64,000 nucleotides of DNA. Origin: Hemiscyllium ocellatum. Its lineage: Eukaryota. Below are positions 3,393 to 60,492 of this stretch, piece by piece. A program made the translations under genes and the position numbers. The stretch is taken from contig NC_083417.1 of assembly GCF_020745735.1 (NCBI RefSeq), forward strand, positions 72,106,001-72,170,000, written 5' to 3'. The first letter of the stretch is position 1, and each line of letters begins with the position of its first letter. The notes below the pieces were generated by a model. That model was not told the DNA's origin and ran no database searches. It saw only the letters and a program-made list of their open reading frames with translations.

Positions 3393-3539
3393 TCATGGAA
3401 TCCAGGTGTTTCCGCTTCCCTGGTTTATTTTGACCTCTGCATACTCCGCCTCCTTTTTATTCGCTTTTTTTGCCGTTTTCTCGGAAGCGGAAAGATTCAA
3501 AGACGCGTAGGTCAGTTCGCCATCTGTCCGGTGCTTTGT
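3393..3539 (-). CDS. Gene 1 terminal exon: ITIM LTYASL and ITSM-like AEYAEV, ends GSGNTWIP*
   Basis: ttattacacag acceptor; 49 codons to TGA; conserved paralog at 22371-22520. Confidence 0.88.
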   Translation of the reverse strand, partial: TKHRTDGELTYASLNLSASEKTAKKANKKEAEYAEVKINQGSGNTWIP

Positions 3540-3616
3540 CTGTGTAATAAAACAATGGAATATAAATAGTTTCTGCGACTCACTTTAATAAAATTATTCA
3601 GGCTGTCGGTGTACAT

Positions 3617-4125
3617 TACCAAGCTGAAAACCACACAACACCAGGTTGTAGTCCAACAAGTTTAATAGCAAGCAAGAACCTTTCGGAGCAACTCTCCTTC
3701 ATCAGATGTTTGTAGAGTACACAATTGTAAGACACAGAATTTATAGTAAAAGTTTACAGTGTGATGTAACTGAAACAACAATCTGTGCAGACACGAATTG
3801 TTAAGGTTAACCTGAGAATGTAACTTTAAAACAAAGTTTTGTGATTTACCTATGAAAGAAGCAAAACTAACACTGTCATTCTAAAAGACGAGAGACTTAA
3901 CAAACAATGCAAGGTGTTTTGCAATGTGTAATTTCAGTTACACCAACTGTAAACTTTTGCTATAAATTCTTTGTCTTAAAATTGTGTACTCCAGAACCAC
4001 TTGAGGAAGGAGCGGCGCTCTGAAAGATTGTGCTTCCAATTCAACCTGCTTGACTTGAACCTGGTGTCGTGCGATTTTTAACTTTGTACATATCAGTCCA
4101 ACACTGGCATCTCCAAATCATTCAT
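3617..4125. mobile_element. Non-autonomous element with about 85-bp terminal inverted repeats, in the last intron of gene 1
   Basis: Left end aaaaccacacaacaccaggttgtagtcc... matches the reverse complement of 4000-4082; absent from the paralogous 142-bp intron; related termini near 36870, 55400 and 63940. Confidence 0.75.
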
Positions 4126-4193
4126 GACTAAAGTCAGACGTGTGTTAGAGCGGTCCCCATTGGAAAACCAATGGTTAATTTTCATGACAGTAC

Positions 4194-4304
4194 CTGCGCA
4201 TACACAAAGCTCTCTTTCTCCGTTAGTAGTTTTGCAGGTTTCCTCTCTCCGCTGAAGTGGAGAGCAGCATAAATCGGACTCACTGCCTCTCTGTCCCGAT
4301 TGAC
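4194..4304 (-). CDS. Gene 1 exon 6: cytoplasmic exon with two tyrosines (PIYAAL, FVYAQ)
   Basis: cttcctcag acceptor, CAG|gtactg donor; 111 nt, phase 0/0; paralog of identical length at 22663-22773. Confidence 0.82.
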
Positions 4305-55884: not shown

Positions 55885-57105
55885 ACAGAACATAGAACAT
55901 GACAACACAGTTCTTCAGCACTCCATGTTGTGCCGACCTTTTATCCTACTCTAAGTTTAAACTAGCCTGCACATTCTTCATTTTACTGTCATCCATGTGC
56001 CTATCCAAGAGTCGCTTAAATATCCCTAATGAATCTGACTCGACTATCACTGCTGGCAGTGCATTCTACCCATCAACCACTGTCAGTGTAAAGAACCCAC
56101 CTTCAATAAATCTTCCTCAAATCATCGTAAAATTATGCTTCCTTGTGATAGCCATTTCTGCCCTAGATAAAAAGTCTCTGGCTTTCCGCTCCATCAATGC
56201 CTTTCATCATCTTGTAGACCTTTATCATCAAGTTCCCCCTCATCTTTCTTCGCTCCAATGAGCTCCCTTAAACTTTCCTCATAAGACATGCCCTCCAATC
56301 CAGGCAGCATTGTGGGAAATCTCCTCTGCACCTTTTTTAAAGCTTCCAAATGCAAGAACAGAACACAATATTCCAACCAGGGTCTAGCCAGGACTTTATA
56401 GAGCTGCAGCATAACCTCGTGGCTCTCAAACGCAATCCCCCTGCTAATGAAAGCCAATAGACCATACACCTTCCTATCAACCTTATCAACTTGGTTCGCA
56501 ACTTTGAAGGATTTATGGACATGAATCACAAAATCCCTCTGTTCCTCCACACTGCCAAGAATCTTGCCTTTAACCCTGCATTCAAAGTTGACCTTCCAAA
56601 ATGAATCACTTTAGACTTTTCCAGGTTGAACTCCATCTGCCACTTCTCCACTCAACTCTGCATCTTGTCAATGTCCTATTGCAACTTCCAACAGCCCTCC
56701 ACACTATCCACAAATCCACCAAACTTCCTGTCATCGGCAAATTTACTCACACACCCCTGTCCAGTTTCTCACCCAAGTCATTTATAAAAATTAGAAAGAG
56801 CAGAGTTCCCAGAGCAGATCCTTATGAAACACCACTGGTCATCAAGCTCCAAGCTGAATACTTTCCATTCACTACCACTGTCTGTCTTCTATGAGAGAGC
56901 CAGTTCTGTATCCAGATAGCCAAATGTCATTGTATCCCATGCTTCCTTACTTTCTGAATGAGCTTATCATGGGGAACCTTGTCAAACGCCTTGTTAAAAT
57001 CCATATACACCACATCTGCTGCTCTACGTTCATATCAACGTGTTTTGTCACATCCTTAAAGAGTTCAGTAAGGCTTGTAAAGCATGATCTGCACTCATAG
57101 CGCCA
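55885..57105 (-). mobile_element. CR1 RT and 3' fragment
   Basis: YGLLAFISRGI...RPWLEYC peptide; catagaacatagaaca tail. Confidence 0.85.
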
Positions 57106-60100
57106 TGTTGATGATTCTTTAGCATGAACAACTGTTAAGACCATGATAACAAAGAGCCTAAGTAGACTATTCAGTGCATCGTGTATTTGCATCGTGTGAT
57201 AATCCTCAACTGTGCTTTCCTACTTTCCCTCCAACCCCAATAACACTTGAATTCTTCATGATTAAAAAACGATCTCTGCCTTGAATACATGTTATGACAC
57301 AATCTCCATATTCCTCTGTAGTAAAAATATTCCACATACACACTAGCTCTGAGAGAAATAGTTCCTCCTCATCATTTTCTTATTCGAATGTATTGTGACC
57401 TTCAGTACAATCATTAGCATTCTAATGTGTCTGCTTCAAGAAAGGTCTATGAATACAAATACAACCTGTTTGGATTGTAGGGAAAATCCACTAAACAAAT
57501 GCAATTATTAACTGAATAAGACACATTATCAACGACGGTTTGCCATCACTAAATTAAACTTATCTGTTATTAGTAAATGATACCTTACCTAATTATATTA
57601 GCTTGGCAGCAAACTGATGCCTTGTGTTTTACCGTGTCCAATATTTCTTTGAAAATGATGTCTCTCCATCTTTTCAGTAGTTCCAAGTTCTGTGTGGAAC
57701 TGTTGCCAGTACTTCCTGACATTTTTTGTCATTCGTTCATGGCATGTGGGCTCTCCTGTCTGGGCTATTTCCTATCACTAGTTATCATTCGAGAAATTGT
57801 GGCAAACTGTTTTAACAAGCAGTTGCAGCCAATTTAGTCTGGGAATTCAAAAACGTGATGTGCTTGACTCAATTGCAGTTGATGATATAGATATTTCTTC
57901 CTCAAGTGAGTTGATTAATTGTCTACCATCATCCACAGCCTACATGTGGTCACTTGATTTTGGAATGTCTTAGCAAATGTAACCAGTGATGGAGGGCCCT
58001 ATCTGACAGGCAAATAGTGATTTTTGATTTTGATATATTATTGTCACATGATACAGTGAAGGTGTTGTTTTGCATGCCATCCAGTCAAGTCAAACTTTGC
58101 GTAAGTGCATCAGGGTAATAGAATTTAGCAGTATATAGATTTACAGCTGTATAGAAAGTGTAAGAGAAAGATTAACTCTAATATGAAAGAGGTCCATTTA
58201 GAAGTCTGATAAAGGTGGGGGGAAATGCATAATGCATTACAGAAGGGTGCACACCTAACACACACAGGCATTGTTTAGTTTCCATCTGGGAAAAAATCCA
58301 TTTATGTTGGTTTGGCGTGTCGATATGTTTTGCTTCTTTTGCATACAATTATAACGACACACAACATGTCTTCAGTTGTTTTATGAATGTTCCATTGACT
58401 TTAGTGTTTTTAATGTTTTTATCCAACAGGCATAGAAAAATGACACACGTCATGATTGCTAATCTAATGTGCAGTGTTGCACAGAGAAATTGATATTATA
58501 TAAATATACTTACGGAAACGAAGAAAATAGGACCAGGAATAGGATATTCGATCATTCAAGACTACTCTACATTTAGTATGGTCACGGTTGATCAGTCAAT
58601 TCAGCACTCTGATCTCACTTTCGCCACTTACTCTTTGATCCCTTCAGCCATAAGAACTATATTGAAATGATTTTTTTTGAAAACCTTCAACGTTTTGGCT
58701 GGAACCACTTCCTTTGGCAAAGACCTTTGCAGGCTCACTATGCGCTGAGTGATGACATTTGTCCTCATTGTTGAGTGAATAATACCGCATCCTTAAACTG
58801 GGACACTTAAATGTGGACTACCTACTTATCTGGAACTCGCTTCCTGTCCATTGGTATTTGAATTCCATACGTTTTTATGAGATTCCCTCTTCATTGTTCA
58901 AATTACAGTGACTATAACCCTATAGCACTTTTCTGGCCCACAAGTGATCTCAAACAAGGACATTAGGAAACAATGAAATACGGGTGAAGTGCAGTTAGTT
59001 GCATAATCTTGAGAAGTGCTTTTCAAATAAATTCCCACAAGCTGCAATTCAGCGTCAATCAGGTTTATGTTTTGGTTATCCTGACTGAAGAATTAGTATT
59101 GACCAGACCACCGACTTAACTCCACGGTCTTCATCAAAAAACAACCCATAGGACCACCAGCCACATCCATTCTAAGGCCGAAGGATACAAATGCCCCATC
59201 TGTCCTATACTCGACTCCTTCCTCATCTCCAAGTTTGGAACTAATAAACCCTTGTCCTCCCAGGTCCTGACATTTCCTTTCTCCCTGAAAGCACAGCTCC
59301 ATCCTCATTGGCTACTGCACCATACAACTTCACCACACAAGAGTCCTTCTCTCCTCTTGAGAGTCAGCATACCCTCAACCTCGGTACCAGGCGCCTCCAT
59401 ATTCCTGACACTGACACTTTTCCTCCCCACTTCTGGCCCCAAATACCTTTCCCAAACTGCTGGACCTGACAACCCATTCTTAATAGGAACTGACATATTC
59501 TGTCCCACTGCTGTCCGATTGGCCCCCAGGATCCTCCTTGCCAGACAGGAACTGGACCCGACTCTCTGCCCATAGGAGTTTGTCCAAAAAAATTCATCAC
59601 TTAATTGGCACACTTAACACATAGTACTCTCTTTACCCTATTTGCAGGGCACTCTAATTACCTTCCACCCCACTTATCTTGCAACTGTCCTATCTGACAC
59701 ATAGACATCCTATCCAATTAGCAATCTGGCATGTGAACGCACTTGACTTCTTATGCACTTGGCCCCCTTCCCACCTTATATTCTCACCTTGCACTTATTG
59801 CATCGGTTATTGTATCCAGTTGTTATATATGAAAATATAACAACTGCCATGAAACAGGGTATATAGTTTTTCTTCCCAACAATTTTCTTGATTATGAGGC
59901 GCGATTGAACTTACACTCCCTATTTCTGCAGGATTCCAATCAAAATCTCCTACCAGAAGTGCGAAGCACTTTCTTCATGTAAATCATAGGAGTAATCTGG
60001 CATTCTGACTATGATTAACACTTATCAGAATATTCAATGTATCTATCCATGCAATTCATAAAAGAACTCTTGGCACAGCAATGGGTACTGTTACGCTTTT

Positions 60101-60217
60101 CTGACATATGTGTTAAGACATTTCACTTGCATGCTATTGAAGTTTAAAAAAGACTCATAAATAGACAAAAATAAGCATGATACAGTTCAATAGCTTGCTG
60201 AGATTTGAGATACTTAC

Positions 60218-60492
60218 CTTGAAGCAGAACTGTGCAATTATCGCTGGCTGAGGCCTCAAGTGATACATGAGAAACTTGGCATGTATAAGTTGACCAGCTA
60301 TCCATTTGAAGCTGGCAACTTCATATAAACTCTTCCTCTTTCGTCTTTTCATAACGTACATTCCAGATGTAATCTCTGTGTCATTTTCATACCCAGTGAG
60401 TTTGAAGTCTTCAGGAAGAAGCCAGCTGTTTTGCAGAGAAAAAACGAGGGTCAGAGAGGATAGCCGAGTAATTGTCACTGGAGTCGGAGACA
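60218..60492 (-). pseudogene. Gene 4 C1 pseudo-exon with frameshifts
   Basis: VSPTPVTITR; shifted frame FLCKTAGFF; EDFKLTGYENDTEITSG; shifted frame YTCQVSHVSL; CAAG|gtaagt. Confidence 0.8.

Follow-up and report, generated by a model that had tools for sequence, protein, structure and literature searches.

A tandem receptor cluster with a single intact gene

We analyzed a 64 kb stretch of the epaulette shark Hemiscyllium ocellatum genome (contig NC_083417.1, positions 72,106,001 to 72,170,000; 64,000 nucleotides, hereafter the window), AT-rich vertebrate DNA that carries exons of a receptor family with V-set and C1-set domains. The window is very probably a segment of a tandem multigene receptor cluster whose old duplicates have mostly been lost by birth-and-death evolution. 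This mode of evolution is drawn from the five family pieces found in the window, namely an intact gene (unit A), a dead gene (unit B), an orphan tail (A') and two lone C1 exons (C and D). A sequence-only reading had described a same-strand tandem cluster of one receptor family with one intact member and several disabled pieces, and our analysis supports this description. Of the at least four units that it counted, a gene and a pseudogene are firm, together with three fragments, two of which (C and D) are lone C1 exons.

Exons were located by tblastn of the window's own exons, by self-blastn of the window and by a six-frame scan with profiles made exon by exon from unit A and 35 family proteins, while exon coordinates, splice sites and lesions were read directly from the sequence. 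The six-frame scan recovers the exons described below and no others in the window; all of them lie on the minus strand, as had been proposed. Both predicted leaders of 55 nucleotides (nt) are present (11188-11242 and 51138-51192) and share the end ATTTATACAG directly before the gt of the donor; the corresponding 12-mer at the leader end, ATTTATACAGGT, is present in the window at these two places only, where 0.01 occurrences would be expected. The two VJ exons, in which variable (V) and joining (J) sequences are contiguous, were likewise recovered (family profile E 2e-43 and 3e-11). Of the three cytoplasmic exons (cy1, cy2 and cy3) there are two copies apiece, one set at 3.4-4.7 kb and the other at 22.4-24.5 kb, in agreement with the two proposed copies of a tail bearing an immunoreceptor tyrosine-based inhibitory motif (ITIM). 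C1 exons had been placed at five positions, four of which are matched by the family profile, at 6.7 kb (E 1e-34), 45.7 kb (E 5e-17), 55.0 kb (E 3e-5) and 60.3 kb (E 4e-9); all four carry the G/gtaag donor noted earlier for four copies, as well as ag acceptors. The fifth, on the minus strand at 43600-43760, was rejected: it has no family-profile match at E ≤ 10, reaches only E 0.5-3 in tblastn, shows Ig (immunoglobulin) hallmark spacing in no frame and is without a GGTAAG donor. Two transmembrane (TM) exons were found (4968-5081 and 42914-42996), and the possible third, at 58.4 kb, is a chance match (E 0.26) without an acceptor. Reading frame, splice sites and hallmark residues bear out the claim that only one unit is intact.

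Unit A, an apparently working inhibitory receptor gene

Unit A spans 3393-11242 and consists of seven exons separated by six introns, all GT-AG, with an open reading frame (ORF) of 1074 nt encoding 357 amino acids (aa); an AATAAA lies at 3211, 180 nt past the stop codon. The leader exon (11188-11242) supplies the ATG and a phase-1 donor. The following VJ exon (10674-10994, 321 nt) displays the V-set Cys, Trp and DxGxYxC hallmarks and the J motif GNGTKLIV, and since V and J are held in this single exon the gene is non-rearranging. In Pfam the exon scores 32.4 bits as V-set (cut-off 26 bits), and its best solved-structure relative by sequence is NKp30 (E 2e-6). The C1 exon (6703-6984, 282 nt, bounded by ag and G/gtaag) scores 40.1 bits as C1-set (cut-off 21 bits) and is 94% identical to P0157, a protein of the same species; its solved-structure matches are generic (major histocompatibility complex (MHC) class II beta, Ig and UrIg2).

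A stalk and an uncharged TM are encoded by one exon (4968-5081; family TM profile E 6e-17), and the tail by cy1 (4652-4695, 44 nt), the phase-0 exon cy2 (4194-4304), with tyrosines in PIYAAL and FVYAQ, and the last exon cy3 (3393-3539), with LTYASL, the second motif AEYAEV and the stop codon. Among these four tyrosine motifs the ITIM consensus is met only by LTYASL. The cy2 profile also matches cy3 (E 2e-5), so that these phase-0 tail exons are homologous and the four-tyrosine tail arose via internal exon duplication.

Unit A keeps 21 of 22 family-invariant residues, the remaining one being a conservative Val-to-Ile change. Its C1-TM-tail part is 92.6% identical to P0157, which is a partial protein, and its leader-V-C1-TM part is 88% identical to P0151 of Chiloscyllium plagiosum over 257 aa, while P0154, P0156 and P0013 align with it end to end (E 1e-93 to 1e-124, 42-55% identity). 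Against a bamboo-shark relative, V and C1 are 87% and 90% identical at the amino acid level, V being not clearly faster. From its exons, unit A is apparently a working inhibitory receptor gene.

In unit A a near-palindromic insertion of ~470 bp (3617-4088, arms 70% complementary) sits in the final intron, between cy2 and cy3; it may be an element resembling miniature inverted-repeat transposable elements. It is missing from the orphan tail copy, where the gap between cy2 and cy3 is only ~140 bp, and related pieces are found immediately upstream of C1 exon C (55354-55498).

A dead activating-type gene and three fragments

Unit B extends over 42914-51192. Its leader exon (51138-51192, 55 nt) has retained the ATG and the donor, and its VJ pseudo-exon (50670-50978) has intact splice sites but a TAA at 50899-50901, in complementarity-determining region 1; one Gly of the J motif and two framework hallmark residues are also gone. 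The C1 exon (45689-45961) is an open frame in which the B-strand Cys has become Trp (TGG at 45903-45905) and a conserved His has become Pro. The TM exon (42914-42996, NLFRLLLG) bears an Arg and is the sole match in the window to the activating TM of the relatives P0001 and P0152 (E 1e-5); it has an in-frame stop ~10 residues earlier than the working relatives P0001, P0152 and P0171. The match to activating relatives points to a gene formerly of the activating type, and unit B is, as predicted from these exons, a dead activating-type gene.

The orphan tail A' comprises a pseudo cy1 (24442-24480), shortened to 39 nt versus 44 in unit A and deprived of both AG acceptor and GT donor, a cy2 (22663-22773, profile E 5e-14) whose splice sites are kept and whose last codon is TAG, and a cy3 (22371-22520, profile E 2e-18) with an open frame, the motifs LMYASL and AEYAEV, and 82% nt identity to unit A. 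The family-profile scan places no TM, C1 or V exon before this tail, and repeats related to long interspersed nuclear elements (LINEs) start immediately upstream of its cy1.

The solitary C1 pseudo-exon C (54987-55271) has kept its splice sites and accumulated several stops and compensating frameshifts. It shares with unit B the exon plus ~0.3 kb of upstream intron at 70% nt identity. The second solitary C1 pseudo-exon, D (60218-60492), carries a net frameshift, and neither its B-strand Cys nor its C-strand Trp survives; if D had a V exon, its place would be past the end of the window.

The copies are old and belong to one family

Nucleotide identity among the copies is 59-72% for C1 exons, 54% for V exons and 74-82% for tails, and in self-blastn the homology continues into introns. 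At 54-82% identity the copies are old duplicates and too divergent for assembly artefacts, in agreement with what had been supposed. In a tree built from 73 C1 rows, the exons of the window (4/4) all fall within one clade of 22 rows with 99% support, together with shark and ray proteins, consistent with the claim that the exons form one family. Within the tree, unit A groups with P0157, P0151 and P0001 (100% support), and the C1 exons of B, C and D have terminal branches of 0.8-0.96, as expected of decaying exons. The best blastx matches of the V exon of unit B and of C1 exons B, C and D are family members (E 1e-12 to 1e-24). For B, C and D these matches lie in other species rather than in unit A, and the three therefore represent older family lineages.

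An unnamed V-C1 receptor family of cartilaginous fish

Judged by sequence, the window genes belong to an unnamed receptor family of cartilaginous fish that combines V and C1 domains with an ITIM tail in some members and an Arg-bearing TM in others. Family profiles match every window exon, and the layout is that of the family: leader, single VJ, single C1, TM and tail. The nearest proteins to the window exons come from hemiscylliid sharks (epaulette and bamboo), and an exhaustive profile search with the V exon retrieved 192 representatives (E ≤ 1e-3). Relatives of full length have the same order of leader, VJ, C1, TM and tail at 30-55% identity, with up to 88% across relatives, and the family is present in sharks, rays (Mobula) and a chimaera (Callorhinchus). 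RefSeq names are inconsistent, including SIRP-alpha-like (PTPNS1-like), tapasin-related-like, NCR3LG1-like, CD276 homolog, Ig lambda-like, H-2 class I-like and uncharacterized, and we found no paper describing the family in the searchable literature.

ITIM-tailed and Arg-TM members both exist, with near-identical ectodomains, a combination that fits a paired-receptor system. For example, P0171 of H. ocellatum has an Arg TM and a C1 domain ~93% identical to that of unit A. It is encoded outside the window on the 85-Mb chromosome of the epaulette shark, which we assume to be the window's own chromosome; the proposal that the cluster continues beyond the window draws on this location. An unplaced contig of 39,944 bp (GCA_020745735.1) encodes a P0171 identical to the chromosome copy, plus P0157, 92.6% identical to unit A. 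Two origins are conceivable for this contig, a divergent haplotype and a paralogous block of the cluster that was left unplaced; its pairing of an identical P0171 with a P0157 93% identical to unit A hints at a haplotype difference in gene content or sequence.

The AlphaFold model of the relative P0154 has a confident V and C1 (predicted local distance difference test, pLDDT, mostly >80), a TM helix and a disordered tail. Foldseek with this model returned only generic matches to Fab (antigen-binding fragment) light chains and T cell receptor (TCR) chains, which do not separate the candidate families. Searched against solved structures, the family profile matches Ig chains, UrIg2 (118.6 bits) and SIRP-alpha (100.2 bits). 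Additionally, RefSeq isoforms from sharks and rays skip the C1 exon, which is phase 1 at both ends (P0007 vs P0005, P0010 vs P0013, P0004 vs P0160), giving V-stalk-TM-tail proteins shaped like NKp30. Loss of C1 could be one route from a V-C1 gene to an NKp30-like receptor.

Repeats between the pieces

The spacer between unit B and the orphan tail (25000-41400) is filled with fragments of retrotransposons without long terminal repeats (non-LTR), with reverse transcriptase and endonuclease ORFs, and with a 27/105-bp minisatellite. Such fragments (Pfam RVT_1, endonuclease-reverse transcriptase ORFs) lie in both orientations at 28089-30850, 31005-32200, 38266-41101, 55994-57095 and 18259-20000, and the pieces at 28089-29622 and 39562-41101 are 74% identical to each other. 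The minisatellite (25874-27626) is degenerate, with 27-bp units nested inside 105-108-bp units, and adjoins LINE fragments. A repeat of ~300 bp resembling short interspersed nuclear elements (SINEs) is present in at least eight copies of 70-91% identity in both orientations (485-803, 8862-9173, 23939-24106, 41131-41375, 49146-49466, 60778-61063, 61402-61703 and 63336-63657), with no Rfam match; an Rfam scan of the window found nothing. At 61968-62481 lies another large repeat that is complementary to itself (536 bp, 76%).

Proposed mechanism and alternative explanations

We propose that the cluster encodes non-rearranging receptors in which a single V domain that includes its own J strand is followed by one C1-set domain and a membrane span, with two kinds of ending, a four-tyrosine inhibitory tail or a short end after an Arg-bearing span. 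Old segmental duplications probably produced the copies, most of which were then lost via nonsense mutations, frameshifts, cysteine loss, splice-site loss and transposon insertion; LINE and SINE insertions occupy the gaps between the five pieces. The V domain of unit A would bind a cell-surface or pathogen ligand, and Src-family kinases would phosphorylate the LTYASL ITIM and the neighbouring tyrosines. The phosphorylated tail would in turn recruit SHP-1 or SHP-2 and dampen cell activation. Conversely, the working Arg-TM relatives P0001, P0152 and P0171 would use their membrane Arg to pair with an acidic residue of an adaptor carrying an immunoreceptor tyrosine-based activation motif (ITAM) and activate the cell.

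Several points weigh against this interpretation. Searches of the public protein collection with queries 80-93% identical did not find the unit A protein, which may be unannotated or silent. Only one canonical ITIM is present among the four tail tyrosines. We infer the ligand, the phosphatase recruitment and the adaptor pairing from motifs alone, and C and D may never have been complete genes.

Unit A itself could be non-functional, either unexpressed or so recently silenced that its frame has not yet decayed, leaving no working receptor in the window; its protein is missing from the public set though those of its same-species relatives P0157 and P0171 are there. We regard this as unlikely, given that the frame of 357 codons is intact, that all six introns are GT-AG and all hallmark residues are kept, that 88% identity to the bamboo-shark protein is maintained over 257 aa, and that the neighbours of unit A carry many lesions whereas unit A does not. 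C and D could be partial duplications of ~1 kb comprising a C1 exon with little flanking intron, never whole genes, so that the window would hold two genes' worth of exons plus fragments. C is indeed unaccompanied by V, leader, TM or tail exons over the 4.9 kb to D and the 3.8 kb to the unit B leader, and its homology to B is limited to the exon plus ~0.3 kb of upstream intron, ending at the donor site. Against this, ag/gtaag splice sites are retained in both exons, partner exons could have been lost to deletions and to the LINE insertions at 56-57 kb, and a V exon of D would lie outside the window. We hold partial duplication to be a real possibility, with the evidence tilting somewhat against it.

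A further alternative takes the orphan tail as the former 3' end of unit B, which would then have been one long gene with both an Arg-TM and an inhibitory ending. The tail does lie directly downstream of unit B on the same strand with no family exon intervening, and RefSeq models of relatives reach 28 kb. Nevertheless, 18 kb of sequence containing LINE debris separate the TM of unit B from the tail, no uncharged TM exon precedes the tail, and the tail is 74-82% identical to unit A at the nt level, whereas the V and C1 of unit B are only 54-59% identical to those of A; we therefore consider a single long gene quite improbable. Finally, the repeated exons might be collapsed or duplicated haplotypes, that is, artefacts of assembly, and near-copies of family genes do occur on the 40-kb contig that this assembly leaves unplaced. 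Near-identical copies would be needed for this explanation, but those in the window, besides their divergence, differ in lesions, intron lengths and transposon insertions, and the window is without N runs. The divergence all but rules this explanation out, and we give it a negligible chance. The birth-and-death cluster thus remains our preferred interpretation, and in this respect the window is an ordinary birth-and-death segment of an annotated but unnamed family and introduces no new principle. Its value lies in an exon-by-exon record of turnover in one cartilaginous-fish immune receptor cluster, in which one inhibitory gene was kept and an activating-type partner and fragments were lost to point lesions and LINE insertions.

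Comparison with known receptor systems

Likeness to KIR/LILR, SIRP and NITR clusters had been proposed for the window. The likeness holds for the paired ITIM/Arg-TM architecture, seen in the window and in P0001, P0152 and P0171, and does not extend to the domain type of KIR/LILR. With NITR and KIR/LILR the family shares tandem same-strand clusters, ITIM-tailed and charged-TM members, many pseudogenes and birth and death. KIR/LILR have C2/I-set domains, in contrast to the V-set and C1-set domains of the shark window, and these Pfam assignments above the cut-offs exclude membership. NITR domains are V plus I-type, and NITRs are known from bony fish only. Rearranging Ig/TCR genes, whose V and J segments are separate and bordered by recombination signal sequences, were ruled out by the contiguity of V and J in one exon in both units A and B. 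A tapasin-related protein was rejected as well: the leader leads straight into V, and the Pfam scan shows no N-terminal tapasin domain.

The resemblance to SIRP is more extensive. Both begin with an N-terminal V, continue with C1-set domain(s) and cross the membrane once, and both have a four-tyrosine tail of the YAxL/YAxV type from two similar exons, and inhibitory forms paired with charged-TM activating forms (SIRP-alpha and SIRP-beta). Many family members are labelled 'tyrosine-protein phosphatase non-receptor type substrate 1-like' in RefSeq, and the family profile matches the SIRP-alpha ectodomain 2wng (E 1e-27) over V plus C1. However, unit A and its full-length relatives have one C1 versus two in SIRP, the family V is of the VJ type and closest to NKp30 rather than SIRP, Ig chains and UrIg2 outscore SIRP in the family-profile search, and activating forms of the shark family use Arg where those of SIRP use Lys. 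Lacking an ectodomain of V plus two C1 domains, the family departs from the SIRP architecture.

NKp30 (NCR3) is the best structure match of the V exon, including the J-like strand GNGT..L.V. Relatives in the family have an Arg in the TM as NKp30 does, and the C1-skipped isoforms of other species (P0007, P0010 and P0004) share its V-stalk-TM shape. The similarity amounts to only ~30 bits, though, and unit A, with its C1 exon, uncharged TM and ITIM tail, resembles NKp30 in V alone and is not a member.

The family shares with UrIg and UrIg2 a germline-joined VJ exon followed by C1 and a restriction to cartilaginous fish (PMC12227049), and UrIg2 (9dmx) is the second-best family-profile match, aligned over V plus C1. 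UrIg2 differs in being V-C1-C2-C3, similar to an antibody heavy chain with an Fc-like dimer (PMC12227049), whereas the shark family is V-C1-TM with signalling tails, multicopy and rich in pseudogenes. Known non-rearranging VJ genes are UrIg, UrIg2, NKp30 and PRARP (PMC12227049, PMC10751288). More speculatively, and with rather low probability in our estimate, the window could be part of a haplotype-variable complex of activating and inhibitory receptors of >200 kb, specific to cartilaginous fish, whose ectodomain joins an NKp30-like V to a C1 of the antigen-receptor/MHC type. It could then represent another survivor among the relatives of the antigen-receptor precursor that do not rearrange, beside UrIg and UrIg2. 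The family itself may be relevant to the origins of antigen receptors and of paired natural killer/myeloid receptors.

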